From assembly GCF_964204645.1 (NCBI RefSeq), contig NC_134033.1:3678131-3742130 (forward strand): 64,000 bases of DNA, in the 5' to 3' direction. The DNA comes from Tubulanus polymorphus. Its lineage: Eukaryota > Animalia > Nemertea. This document shows positions 29,848 to 64,000 of this stretch, piece after piece. Below the pieces are notes generated by a model. That model did not search any database. It was not told the origin of the DNA and saw only the letters and a program-made list of their open reading frames with translations. The first letter of the stretch is position 1, and every line of letters begins with the position of its first letter. The translations under genes were made by a program, and so were the position numbers.

Positions 29848-30798
29848 TTATTTGTTCGTATTTCTACAGCGGATTTTCATACAGAAATATTCACGAATTT
29901 CTCGTCCTAATAAAAGATATACGTAAAAATTTACCAAATAATTACAAACTTGAAACTGAGCAAAAATGTCATACAAAAAATCTGTCTGTTCCGGTGAGAT
30001 CGGTAAAAATATGGTAATAGTGGATGGAAGTGTAAATATTGCGAATGCGAGTGAAACTGTTACAAGCATTATTGTCGTACGTTTTGATTTTGTCGTTTTC
30101 TGATCGGACGAAACCAGTTTTGAACCTCTGAATAACTGAATTATTATAACAGAATTTGATGTCATGATAAAAGTCAATGGTACAAGATAAGAGTGAATGA
30201 CAAATATGGTGAAATATCTTATTTGGTCAAATAATTCATAGTAACACCCGAAAGACTGGTCGGTAAAATGTATCGACAAAGCCGGTGATAGATATATCAG
30301 CAGTATATTTACTGCAGTAATTATCAATATAACAAATCTAGCGAATCTCGGTGTACATATCAAACGAGATGTGAACGGGAAGAGCACAACTGCCGCGCGT
30401 TCTAGAGATATCGCTACTATCAACCACGAACTATTGCTTATCGCAAGCCCCATTACAAATTCATAGATTTGACAACTGATCGATGAATTCATGATGAATG
30501 TAGGACCGACGTTTGGATGTAACAGAACAAACTGTAAAACAGGCATAAGTGTACAATTGGTACAGTACATGGAATCACTGAGAGACAAAACGATCAGATA
30601 GTTAGCGTAAGATAAACTGCGGAATCTGCGACTTATCATTATCAGGAAAGTAGCCGAATTGCCGAACGCTCCGAAAAAGAAGAAAATAGGCAGAGTGACC
30701 AATGACACTGTACGGTAGCTTCCATACCTGTTCACCACAGACATGAGGATGATGTAACTGTCATATGTTCGACCGATATGTATGCCAGTTGTATTCAT
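29848..30798 (-). CDS. Intronless rhodopsin-family (class A) GPCR, FMRFamide-receptor-like orphan, 316 aa
   Basis: Seven hydrophobic segments with GxFGN (TM1), YLxxLSxSD (TM2), ISLER (TM3), FAIFTLP (TM6) and VNFYVY (TM7, NFxxY variant), plus Cys residues at the top of TM3 and in ECL2. Confidence 0.92.
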   Translation of the reverse strand: MNTTGIHIGRTYDSYIILMSVVNRYGSYRTVSLVTLPIFFFFGAFGNSATFLIMISRRFRSLSYANYLIVLSLSDSMYCTNCTLMPVLQFVLLHPNVGPTFIMNSSISCQIYEFVMGLAISNSSWLIVAISLERAAVVLFPFTSRLICTPRFARFVILIITAVNILLIYLSPALSIHFTDQSFGCYYELFDQIRYFTIFVIHSYLVPLTFIMTSNSVIIIQLFRGSKLVSSDQKTTKSKRTTIMLVTVSLAFAIFTLPSTITIFLPISPEQTDFLYDIFAQFQVCNYLVNFYVYLLLGREIREYFCMKIRCRNTNK

Positions 30799-31717: not shown

Positions 31718-34700
31718 CTATTTTGTGCTCCAGAAGTCGATGCCGTCGTGGCTGTCGTCAGCGTTCATTCCGTCGTCTAGTGCAACAGTTTCACGCCCGG
31801 TTATTTCCGGCTGTTTATGTAAACATATATTCGGGGAATAGCTGAAGAAGGTATCAAAACACAATTCGGGTAAAATCTCCTCATTTACCGCCGCTATTTT
31901 ATCGGCTTTCTTTATGAGCACCGATCCGATGTAGTCCATCATGAGAGCGCGAATGCTGTTCCTACAACCGATATACAGGTCGGATAGGCGCGGGAGACTT
32001 TCGATTAATTCGACGATTAGTTCGACCGATATCGTGTCTTGCGTTTCGATGGCGTCATCGTCGAAAGAGACTCCGAGAAATCCGTCCAACTTCAACCGAC
32101 GAAGCGACGAGGCGTTTTTAAGTTGTCGTAAGATGGCGTCGTGCTGTTCCGTTCTGTCGATACCTTTCATTCTATTCATACCGTGAATCAAGCTTATAAC
32201 AACCACTTCTTGCAGCTCATTCGCCACATCTGACGATAGATACCGAACAAGCGCGTCGCCATCAGCTTCTGAGCGCAAGTATACCGATAATACAGTCAGC
32301 CGCGGTATTGGACCTAGAATGCGGCCTATTTGTAGATTATATCCTCTAGCGGCGAGATGCTTTAGTTTCGGCATCGAACCGACGCTGTCGCTGATTTCTG
32401 TCCACTGATTCGTCGTTAGTCGGTCCAGGTGAAGCTCGATCGTTTCGATCGGCGAAGTTTTTAAGGCGCCGTTGAAACTTTTCAATTCTTCGTCGGTCGA
32501 ATGTCCATCGAACAACCGCACGCCGTTAGGCTCGTGTATGCAGTCGTCTCGAAGACGAAGGCTTTTTAATCGCGGAATCAAGTTTGTCAGCTCTCCGATT
32601 ATATTTTTGTTCGCAGTTGCCGAGTAGAGAAATAGATGCTTTAAGAACGGATAGGATTTCTGAATATCGCCTGAAAGTTTCGCTCCTAAAGCCGGAGTTT
32701 TAATAAACAGACTTTCCCCTCTATTTTGCAAGGTAGTAACACAAGTCAACTGATCTTCATCTTCATGTGAAATCGCTTGACTCGTTCCAATCCATTCACA
32801 ATCGACTTTCTCGTAACGTAAACCGAAGTTGATTTCGTCTCTCCAAACAAACCAGTTCATATTCTCGCTCTTCCGACACAAAGTCAAGTATTGGTCATAT
32901 TTGTTTAAAGACGACGAATGCCACGGGTCCCTAACATGGAATATCACACCCTGGACGCTGGCGTTATTCGCTATGGCTGTTACTAATGGATCAAGGTATT
33001 CGTCAGGGCATAATTCGTCGGGTTCCAGTTCGTCACTTATAATAAGAAACCGATTCATTACGTAAACTACCTCGACTCGGCATCGTTCGTGTTCGAGTAT
33101 TTTCGCGAGCGTGTTTACTTCGAATCTGTATTCGGGATCTACGATTAACATTTTCCAGATGTAGTGAACGATTTCGCCGATGGCGTCGTCCGGACAGTCG
33201 GCTTCATCTAGGTAGAGTAACAACTGATTAGGTAACCAATAATAACTTTCGGATCGGAGTTCGACGAAGCGTTTGTAATCGGGGATGAGCGCCGGCAGGA
33301 AGCTATCTCGACGGTCGAATATATTCGCGAAAACTGGCTCATCTTTTAGGACTGCTTTTAAGTCCTTATCTATCAAAGTCTTGAAAAGTTCACCGAGGCC
33401 GCGGTTATGCTTGTAACGATGCAGCAGCCCTGCCATGAATCTCGGGTATAATTCACCATACTTTTCAAGTTCGCCCGTTAGTTGTTCAAACGCGCAATTA
33501 TTCCACGGTGTTTCGCCAATTTCGTTGAATTGCACCACCGAGTGTACCGCCGCCAGAAATTCTTGCACAGATTTGTTAATGAATCGTAGCTGGACGGAGC
33601 GGTCCGATTTCTGTCGCGGCGACATCTCTTTGCACGTCAAAGCCGTCATCTTCGATTCGTACGGTTCGAGACGATTTTCGCTGAAGCTGTTTTGACGCTC
33701 GATGAGCGTCTCGTACGCAACCTTACAAATTTGTGTAAGCGCTTCCGAATGTTCGATGTCACCGAAAAAATGATTCTTCGACACCTTGATGCCCTCGCGT
33801 TTACTGATCAGAAAACATGTCAAATCGATGTAGATATCGGTGAGTTTGGACGGGACCGTAATTTCTTCCTCGTCCATATAGAGAAAACTAAACATATGTA
33901 GTATCAGCGGGTTGTAGTAGATATGTTTGGATAAAGGTGATTCTTTGTTACTAAGCGTTTCAAATAGCTGTTCTGCATCGCGCTCGGGGAAATTTCTCTT
34001 CATGATATCGATGACTTCTTCTTTTTTGAAGCCGGATATCGATACAACGGTGAATTCGGGATTGTTGACGACCATGTTACCCCCGGACTCACGTGTTGTT
34101 ATGACGATAGGCGCTTTTGATAATTCATTAGTCACGCGTACGATGTCTTCCTTCGCTTTATCGTTTTTTAACTCGTCGAAGCCGTCCAGAAAGAATATCG
34201 CTTTTTCTGCATTTTCACGTGCGAATCTCTTAAAACCACCGAACGACAGGTCCTTTTTGATTTCTTGACTTACAAGGTTTTCGAAAATGTACTTATAAAT
34301 GCATGCGTTATCAGCAGGCAGATCGTTTAGCGGTATATAGAATAACATAGGAAACCCCTTCAGAAACTCCGTCGGTGAGCCCGTCCATCTTAAGACCAGA
34401 TTGATTATCTGGGTTGTCTTACCCATACCGGGCTCGCCAACGAGGCACACGCGATTCGCATCCCGCTGGCCATAAGTAAAAAGCTTCTCGAAATCATCGG
34501 GTAAAATCACTGATTGTTCCTCGCTTTCTTCATATCTCAGCGGATTTCGGGGTCGAATTACCGCGTATTCTCTGGTGAAGAAGTCGTGGAAATTGATGAA
34601 TTTATCGCTCCACCAAACCTCTTTGTAATATTCAACATCGATCATTTGTTCGTACGTTTCTTCCAGACATTTCCGAATTTGAGTGACATCTGTAAAATGA

Positions 34701-35149
34701 AATAAATTTACGACTTTTCAAGTTTACGATAACTATATACCGTATTCAGGATCAGAGAAATACTGATTTCATATTTTTTACTTTTTGAATTGAATCCATT
34801 ATAGGCAACGTGGCCGTTCAATATCTCAAAGGATCTGGTGGGCGGGGTCCCTCTTTGACTTCATTTTGAGAGACAAGGTGTGTTTTCTTGCCTCAGAACA
34901 TTAGACCATAGTCTCATGACTTAAGATCACATTTGGACTCAGTTCATATCTGCGCAACGAGATTCTTAGATTTAAATGGTTAAAATCTATAGTTACCAAG
35001 ATCCTCGCGAGCTCTGTCGATGCCTTGCTCGTCTTCATGGTAGTGAACTTCATGTACATGTACATTCATTGTACATTTGTCACCGATTCGAACCAGTTCA
35101 GAATTTTCTACACTTATTTTTTGGACTTCTCTCCTCCATAGTACATGTG
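31718..35149 (-). CDS. NACHT-LRR protein (NLR) with an N-terminal RHIM-like motif; start codon uncertain
   Basis: Exon 34689-31718 has Walker A GEPGMGKTT, Walker B AIFFLDGFDEL, sensor-1 IVITTR, NPLIL, winged-helix FINKSVQEFLAA and ribonuclease-inhibitor-like LRRs (LKHLFL, LKSLRL, LRRLKL). Exon 35149-34997 joins in phase 1 (GT-AG). A probable non-coding exon donor lies at 35331. Confidence 0.88.
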
Positions 35150-35693
35150 CTGAAAAACAAAATATAAAATGCAGACATTTCATCGCAAAAGAACAAACGT
35201 TCAGATATTTTTCCTGACCTAATTTTCTTGTCCAGTTATTCCACAATTAGCCTCTAATCACACAACTACGAAACAGGTTTTCCAAACATGTCGATTCATT
35301 AAATACCGAATCAATCGTTCCTATTATTCACCTTTAAGGCTGTTTTCGATTGAACGTATTCCGCTATAGCAATATTAACTCGTTGATTACAAACTCACTA
35401 ACGGCTCTTTCTCTCAGGTTTACGAGTGATGCTATTTCGGAAAAGGCAGGGTGTATTCCGGAATCGGTGTAGGGACCACAAAACGAAACCTACCAAACTA
35501 TCTATTTTGTCCTTTTGATAAATCCTCTCCTATATACTGATATCCCGCGTATCCATAAAAAATGCGTAGTGCTAGTTTCAAGGGTTTGTCACGTATCAGT
35601 CGAGTATTATGTATATACATAATTCAACAAAGGACAATATCGACGCAGCCCTAATTCCGAGTTTAACTTATCTGTAAGTTCCAAATTCCATTA

Positions 35694-35695
<2 letters not shown>

Positions 35696-35762
<67 letters not shown>
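35696..35762. repeat. (TA)n microsatellite
   Basis: Seen directly. Confidence 0.99.
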
Positions 35763-35763
<1 letters not shown>

Positions 35764-37588
35764 GGCGTCATTGCAAAGTAATGAAACTATTTTTACAAAA
35801 TGTGAATAATGTTCAATCCTCAAGAGCTGAGCTGGTCGGTCTCGATTTAGGGTGAGAACCTGCCGATGACGCATCTAGGGTTGACCACTGTAGCGCTGAT
35901 TGCAGGGAATGGCAGGGACCTTTAGGATTCGAAGTTTTCTTCAAGAGGACCCCAGACCCTTCCCCTGTTAGGGCTTTTTTAGCCGACCAAAACCCCCGCC
36001 AATATTTCTCTTGCAGCCCTCGTAGGCCTATTGCAAAATCTTCTGCCATTTTCAAATGAAGTTCCCGTTTCAACTTCCAGGTCCACCCCTTCAATCCTTT
36101 GAAGACCACGAAGCTCTTCGATGGAATTAGTTTATGGCTTTCTTTCACTTCTCTAACTCCCTTAAAGGAAGATTAAATGCCCAGATTTTGGGGACTACTA
36201 TTGCCAGAAGACTAATTGGATGGGAACTGAATATCAGATGACAAAATGTCACAAGACTTAATGTACTGAATTCACGAAAGAATAAACCTTTGGTCATTTC
36301 ATAACAGCTTATATTATTCATGTGCCAAAAACGAATTTTTGAAATTGAAAGAACAGATAATTATAATTGGATGGGAACCAGTTGTCAGACGACTAAATGT
36401 CAGACGACTAAATGTACTGAATTCATGTAAGAATAAACCTTAGGTTACTTCATAACAGCTTATATTCATGTGCCAAAAACTAATCCTTGAAATTGAAAGA
36501 ACAGATAATTACAATATTTGGCCGGATATCAATGTAATATTTGATACAAATATTTTCAAAGAAAATCGATTCGTTATGTGTCCTTTTTTTGTGTCCGGAA
36601 AATCTTCGGGTGTATGGAATTAATAGAACTCGTTTTTTAATAAAGCGGGAATTGAGCACTGTTTCGCGACAGATCAAACCTGACAGTTGTCTGGCACTGA
36701 CATACAGAAGGTCGATGGTAGGTGTCTTCCTTAATTGTTTTTCTAAGATTTATGTGACGGTTAAAAATTTGTTCATTCTTGTATCTTAATGATTAATCGG
36801 TTCGGGATCAGAAATGCACCCAGCATGACCGTAAGATTTATGTACGTATCTTTGGTGGTAGACACGCTTTGTAACGCTTCCACTCACGAAGGATGGATCA
36901 ATGGTGAAACATTTAGTTTTGAATTTCATAAAAAAGCAGCAGTTATAGTTGATAAATCTACGGAAAAATATGTTCAAGACTCGCTCAGAATTATTTTTAA
37001 CACTTCTTTTTGGCAAACTAATTTGCTGGGGGAGGACCCAGACCTCACGCTGTCGGCTTCGCCTCCATAAGGTATCAATTTTGCGGAAAAGAACACCCCA
37101 CGCCAATATCACGTTACGGTCCTGAAAATGGTTACTTGACGCCTGTTGCCCAGAAGTTGAATCGAGTGGAATCGTACCACAGTTGCAACGAAGTTTAAAA
37201 CTTTCCAATATATTTAAGAGTCGTTGTCAGGTGATGTCAGCTTTCAATACATATAAAAACTAATAGGCCTAACATCAGTACACCGTGGTGCGATGTACTG
37301 GCTAAGTTCATCGCCGATTTATACACCGCGCTGCGGTGTAGATGCACTGAATGGGCAAATCCGTTTCCCACTGGTTAATTAAACAAACTTTAAGCAAACT
37401 GAGCCCCATATTACATATTATGCATAACTAACTTAAGTTTCATTTCACTACACTACATTACAATATAAATTCAAGGTATCTTCTACGGATAATACGATAA
37501 AAACCCCCACTATAAAAAACCACCTACAGATTAAAAGAATTTTAAAATCAAGAATTTATTTATTCGAATAATTTAAAATATATAAAAT

Positions 37589-37630
37589 ACACGACGTTTC
37601 GATCTCACCCCAGAGATCATCGTCAGGTGT
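37589..37630 (-). ncRNA. Minimal hammerhead ribozyme motif (PLE 1, inverted pLTR)
   Basis: Minus strand: acac-CUGACGA-u-gaucuc-uggggu-gagauc-GAAA-CGUC-gugu. Confidence 0.8.
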
Positions 37631-38569
37631 GAGATATAGACTAGAAACAGGGGTATATATTTTTCTATTCACTTTTGAATGGGAACAAAATGACCAAATT
37701 CCGTTTTTAGATGTTCTAATTCACAATAAATTTTCTCATTTGATTTTCTCAGTCTACCGCAAACCTATCAACGCCGAGGCATACCTTCACTTCTTTTCGT
37801 TTACTGCTAAATCAATCAAAATTGGTCTCGCTCAAGGCCTCTTTCTCCGTGCACTGCGGATCTGCGATGAAACCTTCCTTTCGGCTGAATTTGAACATAT
37901 ATCCAACTCTCTTAAAAAATTGGCTTACCCTGATCACATTTTGAAAATCGCTATTTCTAGGGCTAAACGAACTTACTTTAATTCTAAACCTCCTGAAAAT
38001 AAAAAAACACATTTCAGAATTCATTGTAGTTCCGTATGTACCTGTTTTGGAAAAGTTTCGCCACTCTCTCCCTTTATTGGAAAAACAAATTATTTTCAAG
38101 TATGAAAATAAAATTAGTAAGACTTTAGTAAAAACAATCAATCTAAACCTTTGGACTGCGGAGTTTACAGAATTCCTTGTTTTGGCTGTGATAAAATTTA
38201 CTTTGGAGAAACTGGTCGTGAATTAAAAACTCGAATTTCGGAACACAAAAAGGATATAATAAATCAAAAACCGGCTAGTGGCGGAGCCAATCACGTTTGG
38301 AACACTGGTCATCGTTTTAATTTTGATAAAGCCGAAATTATTTATACTTCCAGCAATTACACTAAACGCCACATAGTTGAGTCTGCCCTAATTACTCGTC
38401 ACTCAGATATTAGTACCAATTTAAATAATGGCTTTTCTCCGCGCAATTCCCTTCTTTCTAAGTATATTACTTCATGCCTTGCCAAACACTAATTATTTAC
38501 TCACTCACCAATTTACTCAATTAACCTGTCCTCCTCTGTATATATACCCCTGTTTTTAGTGAATATCTC

Positions 38570-38611
38570 ACACCTGACGATGATCTCTAGGGTGAGATCG
38601 AAACGTCGTGT
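38570..38611 (+). ncRNA. Minimal hammerhead ribozyme motif (PLE 1, 3' pLTR)
   Basis: acac-CUGACGA-u-gaucuc-uagggu-gagauc-GAAA-CGUC-gugu. Stem I is acac/gugu, stem II gaucuc/gagauc, with palindromic ACGU in place of stem III. Confidence 0.85.
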
Positions 38612-39056
38612 ATTCTATATATTTTAAATTGTTCGAATAGATAAATTCTTGATTTTAAAATTCTTTGTATCTGTAGATAGCGGGTTTTTATCTTATAAAC
38701 AATTACTTAATTACCTCGACAGACACCCCAGAGAAAATTTGATATCATGTGTGGTCAGCACCACTACACAATAGGTGTAATATAATAATAGCTTAGACGA
38801 CGCATAGATAATACGGACAAGTCCAGCCTTAAAAAATGCATTATGGACCATCCGTACAAAGCGTGTTCATTTACTATAGAAGTGAATAGGAGATCGTAAG
38901 ATATTACATCGAATTACGCCGGGAATCCCGTATTAACGAGAACGCGACTAAGCAAACATTTTCACAGGAAAATGCTTCAAGAAAAGTCGGGAATTATTAG
39001 ATTCATCGTAAGTAACCAGACGAGTAGTACTGCATAGGTTAACTATTTATTTGACG

Positions 39057-39097
39057 CACGAGCTTTCGCTTCTAACGAATAGAAGCTTCATCAGCTG
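39057..39097 (-). ncRNA. Minimal hammerhead ribozyme motif (stem I imperfect)
   Basis: Minus strand: cag-CUGAUGA-a-gcuucua-uucgu-uagaagc-GAAA-GCUC-gug. Confidence 0.65.
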
Positions 39098-39107
39098 AGT
39101 GATCATT

Positions 39108-39149
39108 CACCTGATGAAGCTTTTATTCATTTAGAAGCGAAAGCTCGTG
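39108..39149 (+). ncRNA. Minimal hammerhead ribozyme motif
   Basis: cac-CUGAUGA-a-gcuuuua-uucauu-uagaagc-GAAA-GCUC-gug, with palindromic AGCU in place of stem III. Confidence 0.8.
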
Positions 39150-39520
39150 CGTCAAATAAATAGTTAACCTATACTCAGTACTACTCGTCTCGTTACTTAT
39201 TTTTAACCTGGTTAACACGGCTACTCCACGGATCGATTCATCGTATTGCTGAGGTCTTCGTTGTAAGCCGAAACGTACTAACGAGACTCGACTGTGAATG
39301 AGGGATCCTGCGCCGGTCTTTGACGGCTGAACTTACAAATTTCGAGGTCCCGGAAAAGTGCACTTTCATTTTGAATTCTACAAAAGTTAACCGACGTGTT
39401 ATGTGACTAGTCACCCTCGGCTCAGAACTATCGATGCTTTTTCCCAAATAATCAGTGCGAGGAGGAGAGAATCCCACAAAGATAATAAAAAGTCCGAAAA
39501 TGAAACTTCGAGATAGTAGT

Positions 39521-39567
39521 TTATTTCAACGTTTCGACTATATCCTAATAGTCATCTTCAGGAATAA
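39521..39567 (-). ncRNA. Minimal hammerhead ribozyme motif (CUGAAGA variant)
   Basis: Minus strand: uuauuc-CUGAAGA-u-gacuau-uaggau-auaguc-GAAA-CGUU-gaaauaa. Confidence 0.75.
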
Positions 39568-40065
39568 TGAGATACTACAGAAATTATGAGATATATATAT
39601 ATACAATCCAGGGACAAATTCAGAGACTAATTCAAGTAATCAGAGATGATACAAACTAAAGGAAAATTAACGTAGAAACAGTTACACGCTGAAAAAGATT
39701 AAAGGGAAGCAAACTAAGGGGTGATTATAAACAACAATAGTGAGTATAAATATAAATGAAACTTAAAGTCAGTAGTAAAAAGAAAGACAAACTAGGGGGC
39801 ACTTAATTAAATTAAACCAAATGTGAATACAAGTTAAGTCAGAGACGAAATTGATGAGAGAACAATTAACAAATAATCAAAGGGGAAATCAAGTGTTGAG
39901 TTTAACCAGTTTACAGAGGAATTTTGATATAAGTTTATTATGGGGTGAAAAACCATTGTTAAGGTTTACAACGTTGTTCGAATTTTCAATAATTAATGCA
40001 GATTCCAAAATATGTTCCTCTTGGACATATGTTCCTCTATCTCTCATAATTTCTGTAGTATCTCT

Positions 40066-40112: not shown

Positions 40113-41035
40113 ACTACTATCTCGAAGTTTCATTTTCGGACTTTTTATTATCATTGTGGGATTCTCTCCTCATCGCGTCAACACGGATATTGTGTTCTAC
40201 CTATCGTAATCAGTGCGAAAATTGCATTTAACCGGAAAGATAACTAGTGCGTCAATATTAGGGTTTATTGCAAATATCGACATTTAAATGTTAAGAGGTC
40301 GATCCCATTAATGCGATGTATTTTTTATTGGTGTTGTTTGTTGAACTGCGTCAGTTTTATAGCTATTGTCAATAAAGGAAATGTAAGTTGTATAATTGCA
40401 GTCTTCAGTTTGAATACATGTAATCCTTTGAATGACGGAAACCCGTTTTTTCAGTGTCGATGAAACCTAGGCCGTTATAGGTATTGATAATTGAAGCCAC
40501 GTTCAAAATGTTGAGCGGAAAAATGGGCAGCCTTTTCAGAATTTTTTGGCATACCCTTTGTAGGATTTTTGGCAATTTGAGCCTGCCCTTGTTATGATAT
40601 TTGACAATAAAGAAGTTTCCAGTTTCTAGGCGCCATTTTTAAGGGCATTATTAACAATTCTTTACAATTCTTGTGATTATTTCTGGCCATTCAGGTTTTT
40701 TTAAAACTACTTTTGGCAAAGAATGTGCGCCTTTTCTAAGAATACAAGACCCTCTATTTATAGTTTTTTTCAATACCATAGGCTACTTACTTACTGAAAG
40801 TACTTTTTAGCCATTCTTTATAGATTTTTTGTTTGTTATAATTTCTGGCCTCGCAGGATTTTAGAACAATTTTTGGCGATGAATGTGCCCTTTTCTAACG
40901 AACCCTATTGAAATGCTCAATTATAAAAAAATATTAAAAATTTCTTTTTAAATCCTAGGCCACTTCTTTAGAATTTTCTTGTAATTATTTTTGCCCTCTC
41001 AGCACTTTTTTGATTCAAGGACTAAGGACTTCCAT

Positions 41036-41323
41036 CAGTCAGTCAGTCAGTCAGTCAGTCAGTCAGTCAGTCAGTCAGTCAGTCAGTCAGTCAGTCAGTC
41101 AGTCAGTCAGTCAGTCAGTCAGTCAGTCAGTCAGTCAGTCAGTCAGTCAGTCAGTCAGTCAGTCAGTCAGTCAGTCAGTCAGTCAGTCAGTCAGTCAGTC
41201 AGTCAGTCAGTCAGTCAGTCAGTCAGTCAGTCAGTCAGTCAGTCAGTCAGTCAGTCAGTCAGTCAGTCAGTCAGTCAGTCAGTCAGTCAGTCAGTCAGTC
41301 AGTCAGTCAGTCAGTCAGTCAGT
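41036..41323. repeat. (CAGT)n microsatellite, ~72 units
   Basis: Seen directly; it lies just upstream of the acceptor at 41373. Confidence 0.99.
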
Positions 41324-41450
41324 TAACTACGAGTTAAAATTCGAATGTTTTTTCTCATCATTTTCTTTTCTAGATGCTATTGAAACCGTTGTGTGAAATC
41401 GGCGGGACTCAGTGAATGAGAATCTAAAAATCGACGGAAACTCTCCGAAA

Positions 41451-63068: not shown

Positions 63069-64000
63069 GGACCCCACACCCTTCCCCTGTTAGGGCTTTT
63101 TTCAGTCGACCAGAACCCCCACCGATATTTCTCTCGCAGCCCTTGTAGGTCTATTGCAAAATCGTCTGCCCTTTTCAAATGAATGGTTCGAATCGGTGAC
63201 AAATGTACAAATGAATCTACCCGTTTCAATCTCCAGGTCCACCCGGCCCCTGGTGTGATGAAACACAAACCAACTGGTTTCATTTAGAGTAGGTCTACTA
63301 AATACTGTCAGCTAATCGCTTATTATACCACAACAGTAAACTATGTATTAAGATATAAAGATATGAATGCAAACCCTAAATTCGGATATGATATCTGGTA
63401 ACTTTGAGTGGCAATAGTAATACATGTAGGCCTATAATGCACGTGTATGTCTCAAATTGTTTGTTTGAACATATTGTATCTAAATCATGTAACGAATTAT
63501 TTTGTATCGAACGAATGTTGCACATTATCATAATTCTCAATCAATTTATATATAATTAGTGTGTAAACATCACCGTATTATATAGATCATTAATGATCCG
63601 GTTTTCTGTGAGAAAAATTTCTTTCGTTTTGGTTTCACTCTATTTTGCATCAAAGGAATTCTCTCGCACCTGGGACGACCGTTATGTCGATGGCTGATAT
63701 ATTTGGACTAATACAGTGATAACTCGAGTAATGCGATGACTTCCTTACCATGATCCAAACGAAATTGAAAAATCTTTAATTTTAAACTGCATTTTATAAA
63801 AGTAAAGTTCTAAAATTTTTTTTCTAAAAGAAATTACGAAATCATCTAAGCTCAGCTTAGATGACGTCATTATTAGCCAATCAGATATCCCGGTTTATTT
63901 TAGCCCGGGTTTTTCCCATTTATAGTTTATCCGTGAAATATGCCACTTTGCGATTTTACAACGGGCAATCTGATTGGCGCGGAAAGTTTTCGTGCAGCAA

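Follow-up and report, generated by a model that had tools for sequence, protein, structure and literature searches.

Proteins in which a RHIM is combined with a NACHT domain and repeats have been described in Branchiostoma floridae on the basis of their sequences, e.g., BF82280 (Kajava, Klopffleisch, Chen & Hofmann 2014; PMC4262963), and other invertebrates carry subsets of the Branchiostoma RHIM families (PMC4262963). Some amphioxus proteins contain two or three RHIMs, and other RHIM-bearing immune proteins are found in the same animal. In the fungal pairs NWD2/HET-S and PNT1/HELLP (PP motif), the receptor, of the NACHT or NB-ARC type, uses its short N-terminal amyloid motif as the template for the matching motif of a separate effector (PMC4262963, PMC12881547). 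Divergent RHIM-like motifs are also carried by the Drosophila innate-immune receptors and adaptors PGRP-LC, PGRP-LE, PGRP-LA, and IMD (PMC4262963). The RHIM core tetrad is (V/I)-Q-(V/I/L/C)-G (PMC9444067), and the nucleation of amyloid by RIPK1 and RIPK3 is dominated by aliphatic residues at the interface of the first strand (Y531/I533/I539/I541 in hRIPK1) and by the Gly after the core (bioRxiv 10.64898/2026.02.19.706818).

The ribbon worm Tubulanus polymorphus (Nemertea) has a NACHT-LRR gene family with 18 or more intact members, most of them with one or several RHIM-encoding first coding exons. By description, these genes are similar to the amphioxus ones in that an N-terminal RHIM takes the place of a death-fold domain and is followed by NACHT and repeats. 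This architecture is not new; what the locus described here adds to it is a member whose RHIM module has probably decayed. The ribbon-worm genes differ from those of amphioxus in belonging to a nemertean and in carrying their RHIMs on duplicable phase-1 mini-exons, in up to 10 tandem copies, and the copy studied here differs further in being frameshifted and having VRIG as its core. Similarly to RIPK1, RIPK3, ZBP1, and TRIF, the modules of its paralogues match the RHIM profile and have the core tetrad and a ...G-D-N-N-T-M tail. Unlike the mammalian RHIM proteins, the ribbon-worm genes were found in no RIP kinase context, and in the copy studied here, which is probably untranslated, the Gln is replaced by Arg. 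The Drosophila RHIM-like motifs reside in cytoplasmic tails of peptidoglycan receptors, whereas those of the ribbon worm are found on NLRs.

The window analyzed here is a 64,000-nucleotide stretch of the T. polymorphus genome (C9:3678131-3742130), and plain position numbers below refer to it; the genome searched comprises 268 Mb. The RHIM-like motif noticed in the preliminary description, ISVENSELVRIGDKCTMNV, is the translation of positions 35117-35061 of the minus strand and is present there letter for letter, which confirms that it is real as a sequence. It lies within a 153-nt exon (34997-35149, minus strand) that ends in phase 1 and was delimited by DNA alignments with paralogue exons and by the RefSeq junction; its acceptor AG (35151-35150) comes with a polypyrimidine tract, and its donor GT is found at 34996-34995. 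This RHIM-type exon joins in phase to the exon of LOC141910915 that starts at 34689, the junction codon being composed of G (34997) and AT (34689-34688) and specifying Asp, as in the RefSeq product of this gene, P0001 (...AREDL-D-VTQIRK). The previously proposed 34997/34689 junction is accordingly of phase 1 and agrees with the P0001 sequence, a predicted model. The two exons were searched separately, and the joined product is represented by the P0001 database entry. DNA contigs from four runs span the intron of this gene contiguously and contain no spliced junctions. In the motif frame, the encoded peptide reads ...VQKISVENSELVRIGDK, and the segment encoded upstream of Met 35069 includes VQKISVENSELVR.

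The second of these exons (31718-34689, minus strand) has an intact frame of 989 codons plus a stop, according to the open reading frame list and the Pfam search. It encodes a NACHT domain at residues 79-235 of the exon translation (33983-34453, minus strand; Pfam E=4.7e-14) with the Walker A motif GEPGMGKT and a Walker B motif, as well as a weak match to the NLRC4_HD2 helical domain (Pfam 2.2e-4). Sequence models detect the LRRs weakly (Pfam LRR, E=0.09; phmmer against PDB, E=0.33). In an AlphaFold2 model of the C-terminal 375 residues, made with the paralogue alignment (pTM 0.71), these residues form a strand/helix repeat, with alternating strand/helix units encoded at 31877-32782 (minus strand), and the best Foldseek matches of this model are the LRRs of NLRC4, NLRP1, NLRP3, and ribonuclease inhibitor (best E value, 9.5e-7, ranging to 1e-4), so that the label "NACHT-LRR" is correct. 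The encoded sequence combines the two features that define an NLR, a central NACHT NTPase with Walker A and C-terminal LRRs. The Pfam search of ORFs upstream of the NACHT exon found no death, CARD, or TIR domains, and the earlier statement that the RHIM-like motif is the only visible N-terminal module stands for what is visible. An intronless ORF of 316 residues for a rhodopsin-type GPCR (29848-30798, minus strand; Pfam 7tm_1, 1.1e-16) sits ∼0.9 kb downstream of the stop codon of the NLR gene.

With a motif profile built in a leave-one-out fashion, the window ORF scored 26.5 bits, compared to at most 8.1 bits for 2000 shuffles. At the DNA level, the window exon aligns with the paralogue exons over the acceptor, the start codon, the motif, the donor, and ∼110 nt of the upstream intron, and these alignments indicate that its resemblance to RHIM is homology by descent rather than chance. 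The Pfam RHIM model (PF12721; 22 positions, curated cut-off of 20 bits), by which the preliminary description proposed to score the peptide, gave no match even at E<=10, placing the window copy below the cut-off that three paralogue modules exceed. Its core, V-R-I-G, departs from the RHIM tetrad by a one-base change, CAA to CGA, at 35090-35088 (Q to R). The aliphatic pattern I-x-V-x5-V-x-I-G is kept (alignment A2); with residues equated to those of RIPK1/3 through the register of Pfam and the consensus, the four aliphatic positions and the Gly are intact, so the peptide, if produced, might still be prone to aggregation. A stray duplicate of the RHIM exon core, 42 nt long and with 93% identity, is found at 63180-63220 (plus strand); it encodes ...VRIGDKCT..., including the window-specific Arg codon, and is not followed by a NACHT exon within 10 kb downstream.

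A six-frame search of the genome with the exon peptide retrieved paralogous exons with canonical cores, such as MAESNPQINVDNSESVQIGDKCTM. The profile search yielded 51 module matches, clustered on C6, C8, C9, C12, C32, and C56, and the NACHT search detected 18 intact and ∼5 broken paralogues. RHIM-type modules are located upstream of the NACHT exon, on the same strand and at a distance of 0.3 to 6.5 kb, in ∼13 of the 18 intact paralogues and in 2 of the broken ones, so the motif does recur on NLR paralogues. Their cores are VQIG or VQMG, and the family consensus is MAxSNPGINVxNSxxVQIGDNNTMNV, of which phase-1 cassette exons carry between 1 and 10 copies. The modules that score above the Pfam RHIM cut-off are C56:25435 (20.9 bits), C6:17608530, and C6:18094833 (22.1 to 22.3 bits); the others fall below it. 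The RefSeq models P0002, P0003, P0004, P0006 to P0008, P0010, and P0013 begin with 1 to 7 RHIM motifs and place RHIM and NACHT in a single polypeptide, which is the case neither for P0001 nor in the reading-frame analysis of the window. The term "RHIM-NACHT-LRR sensor" that had been applied to the window gene is therefore apt for the family, given the Pfam-passing modules and the RefSeq N-termini, and probably does not hold for the window gene itself, whose start is frameshifted.

Several other arrangements were observed in the family. Approximately 72 kb before the window, at C9:3605409-3606065 (plus strand), ten tandem repeats of 63 nt (21 residues each) encode MAESNPGINAENAEIVQIGDK; each unit covers the initial half of the motif, as far as the core, the array adjoins a NACHT-LRR exon (P0004), and 7 of the 10 repeats are annotated in RefSeq. 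P0009 and P0012 (NACHT matches C6:22259903 and C6:22307639, respectively) have a signal peptide, a long ectodomain, a transmembrane helix, and NACHT-LRR; the ectodomain looks Ig-like by eye, and this layout would be that of a membrane-anchored NLR. P0005, by contrast, has an N-terminal region of 330 residues. The RefSeq start of P0011 (LOC141914658 isoform X2), a gene with an intact RHIM module, is a Met inside the motif tail (MNVYQGD...), which reflects either RHIM-less isoforms made from intact genes or RefSeq models that are short at the 5' end.

The reading that best accommodates the window copy is that its motif represents a decayed, most likely untranslated relic of a real RHIM module; judged on the sequence data, this reading is probably correct. 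The conserved start codon of the family (actATGg, 35137-35139, minus strand) is found 10 nt after the acceptor, the same spacing as in the P0002 and P0004 genes, and in its frame the window exon encodes MEERSP, which matches MAESNP of the paralogues. The A6 run at 35117-35122 (minus strand), however, has one extra base, located after TCC, relative to all aligned paralogue exons in the DNA alignments. This inserted base takes the conserved ATG out of the motif frame, and the ATG now starts a uORF of 13 codons, MEERSPKNKCRKF, terminated by the TGA at 35100-35098. A compensating frameshift in the form of an acceptor-ATG spacing one base shorter was considered and ruled out, as the spacing is also 10 nt in the P0002 and P0004 genes. 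Contigs from the assembly sample are identical to the window at the A-run, and a contig from a second sample has the same A-run along with differences nearby; the extra base is not an assembly slip of a single data set.

The window exon lacks an in-frame ATG in the stretch from its acceptor to the VRIG core. The first in-frame ATG of the long ORF, at 35067-35069 (minus strand), encodes the Met of the motif's own "...CTM" tail, which follows the core, and it is here that RefSeq places the start of P0001 (1014 aa, MNVHVHEV...). By itself, this RefSeq start is weak evidence because the P0011 model, too, begins at the corresponding Met, although its module is intact. Together, the reading frame and the RefSeq start suggest that the exon is most likely untranslated in the motif frame, which is one of the outcomes by which the preliminary description would be refuted, and translation of the motif in any form appears unlikely. 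The window exon is also 36 to 40% identical to the P0002, P0003, and P0004 modules, which are at least 66% identical to each other at equal NACHT identity (72 to 74%), and has diverged about twice as fast as the paralogue exons. A plausible course of events is that the module was disabled by the single inserted base that separates the conserved ATG from the motif. Translation from that ATG would stop after 13 codons, and the NACHT-LRR frame would be entered solely at ATG 35069; with that entry, the LOC141910915 protein would begin with MNVHVHEV... and lack the I-x-V...VRIG core. The replacement of Q by R and the rapid divergence of the exon would both be consistent with relaxed constraint after the frameshift. 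In that case, LOC141910915 would either encode an NLR without a RHIM, whose translation bypasses three upstream ATGs, or be a young pseudogene in which the large exon has so far stayed open.

The competing proposal, made in the preliminary description, is that of a working RHIM-NACHT-LRR sensor whose translated N-terminus is the motif, with the VRIG core and the Cys endowing it with a distinct amyloid specificity. It draws on the motif frame being open from the acceptor in the reference allele, on the retention of the aliphatic tetrad and Gly, and on the clear use of such motifs in the family. These points are countered by the out-of-frame position of the conserved ATG in an exon that offers no other entry before the core, by a RefSeq coding sequence that begins after the core, by the failure of tblastn, Pfam, and the phase scan to find an upstream coding exon, and by the lack of a Pfam RHIM match for the window peptide. 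A second individual provides a further argument: its contig has a 7-nt deletion at 35137-35143 (ATGTACTATG to ATG), between the acceptor and the motif, which alters the phase of the motif relative to the acceptor. The same contig has an in-frame CCT insertion (+3) after 35022, downstream of ATG 35069, and ∼1% single-base differences. In an unspliced reading, ATG 35183 is in frame in the reference allele and a neighboring upstream ATG is in frame in the deletion allele; the use of the 7-nt deletion as proof of the noncoding status is weakened by that other ATG. As for the separate specificity class, P0003, whose core is VQIG, has the same Cys-containing DKCTM tail, and the Arg occurs in no other listed module, its only carrier being the copy that has lost its reading frame; the class is therefore unsupported. 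On balance, a working sensor with its own amyloid specificity seems rather improbable at this locus.

It could also be argued that the whole gene is a young pseudogene, which would yield no functional protein and in which the 989-codon exon is open because the frameshift is recent. Three out-of-frame upstream ATGs (35146, 35139, and ∼35077) with short ORFs precede the annotated start, ∼5 members of the family are clearly broken, and a 2015 run of T. polymorphus, presumed to be RNA, contains almost no sequence words of this gene. Conversely, the 2970-nt frame is intact and retains Walker A and Walker B, RefSeq models the gene as protein coding, and the indel that follows the annotated ATG preserves the frame. 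Loss of the entire gene is a fairly remote prospect; the pseudogene explanation overlaps with that of a decayed RHIM module, which leaves either fate for the RHIM-less product.

A third possibility is that the motif frame is entered from farther upstream, through a coding exon that escaped detection or an unspliced leader with ATG 35183 as its start, yielding an NLR with a charged-core VRIG RHIM that could serve as a poisoned, non-propagating cap or a private nucleator. No stop codon interrupts the motif frame of the reference allele from the acceptor onward or over the 43 codons upstream of the motif, so an unrecognized phase-1 coding exon would indeed translate the motif. The only in-frame ATG upstream, however, is the one at 35183-35181, which lies inside an ancestrally intronic stretch: positions 35150-35260 (minus strand) are homologous, by blastn and alignment, to the intron DNA that precedes the RHIM modules of the paralogues. 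A tblastn search of the window with all paralogue N-termini found no RHIM-type exon on the minus strand within 28.8 kb upstream; a scan of 1.45 kb upstream for phase and ATG found no decent phase-1 donor with an ATG-open frame and just two poor donors; and the Pfam search of the upstream ORFs returned no domains. Two blocks, 35482-35581 and 35652-35717 (minus strand), detected by blastn, are conserved with the region upstream of the P0003 RHIM exon. The P0003 coding sequence begins in its own RHIM exon, and the blocks, 330 to 570 nt upstream of the window acceptor, are common to the P0003 gene; they likely represent a noncoding first exon or a promoter. Entry from upstream is therefore quite doubtful. 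If it did occur, the VRIG-containing NLR would act within a RHIM network together with the TIR-RHIM adaptor and the RHIM-tailed ORF of the GC-rich island described below. The sequence upstream of the NLR gene also contains a (TA)n microsatellite (35690-35760). Farther upstream, a 12-nt tandem repeat (41016-41352) reads SQSV in one frame; reads pile up heavily on repeats at 37200-39800.

Finally, a chance match to a short, low-information pattern, for which one could cite the motif length of just ∼19 residues and the missing Pfam match, has virtually no probability, being refuted by the profile score relative to the shuffles and by homology in DNA, splice sites and flanking intron included, to modules above the Pfam cut-off.

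In the mechanism proposed for the ribbon-worm family, by analogy with the amphioxus RHIM-NACHT proteins, for which it has been suggested, and with NWD2/HET-S and PNT1/HELLP, for which it is established (PMC4262963, PMC12881547), ligand-driven oligomerization of NACHT would cluster the N-terminal RHIMs of the ribbon-worm NLRs, and the clustered RHIMs would nucleate a cross-beta fold that is templated onto RHIM-bearing adaptors. The cassette structure, with an ATG in each module and phase-1 splicing in the multimodule genes, would tune the RHIM copy number. The mechanism would be the same as in the fungal NLR/amyloid pairs, although the fungal partners are encoded by adjacent genes and include a pore-forming effector of the HeLo/HELL type, whereas the ribbon-worm candidates are unlinked and one of them is a putative TIR-RHIM adaptor. 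Neither a HeLo/HELL-type effector nor an adjacent partner of the ribbon-worm NLRs was found. The earlier observation that the window contains no partner was correct; RHIM carriers other than NLRs are located elsewhere in the genome.

The best candidate comes from a scan of the genome with the Pfam RHIM model, which detected on C3 an ORF of 418 residues, contained in a single exon, whose RHIM scores 21.7 to 26.2 bits, above the Pfam cut-off (VINIYHAKGVQLGNSNTMT; C3:26755833-26755889, minus strand). In an ESM Atlas comparison, the first 185 residues of this ORF are similar to the TIR domains of TICAM1, TICAM2, and MyD88 (feature score, 0.91; TM score normalized by query, 0.65 to 0.69), and the combination of a TIR-like N-terminus with a RHIM gives this protein the domain order of TRIF. 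It can be considered a lead for a TRIF-like TIR-RHIM adaptor and candidate partner of the RHIM-NLR family. The tail of this ORF is acidic, with KND-x-TERKTVD repeats. A PDB sequence search with this ORF returned nothing useful, and word searches with it and with the RHIM-tailed ORF from C8 found no relatives of either.

The weaker carriers include that C8 ORF, whose 229 residues end in a RHIM-like motif (19.4 bits); an acidic-tailed ORF, also on C8; and an exon at C7:3977744-3977797 (minus strand) that encodes a hydrophobic stretch, transmembrane-like in character, and directly after it the RHIM-like motif IIHVNKCKNVQIGNNNF (...NVQIGNNNF; 16 bits). A death domain suspected in the ORF next to the C7 exon had no Pfam support. 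The 229-residue ORF is found in a 10-kb stretch, C8:4545000-4554999, with a GC content of 51 to 53% in the first 8 kb and 45 to 47% beyond, compared to 41% for the window. This stretch contains 13 intronless ORFs on a single strand, with no Pfam matches, and some of these ORFs are distantly paralogous to one another. The stretch may represent an island of foreign or virus-like nature, and its RHIM may be a decoy.

The ribbon worm provides a second, independent case among animals, after amphioxus, of NLRs that have a RHIM in the place of the death-fold effector domain. The proposed ancient link between the animal RHIM and the NLR-amyloid signaling of fungi and bacteria thereby becomes testable in a spiralian, thanks to the variable RHIM cassettes, in 1 to 10 copies, and the possible TRIF-like TIR-RHIM partner. 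The window copy serves as a caution that not all RHIM-like exons in this ribbon-worm family are functional: here, the RHIM module has probably been lost through a single-base frameshift, while the NACHT-LRR body has stayed open. LOC141910915 would thus represent a natural RHIM-less allele for comparison with its intact paralogues.
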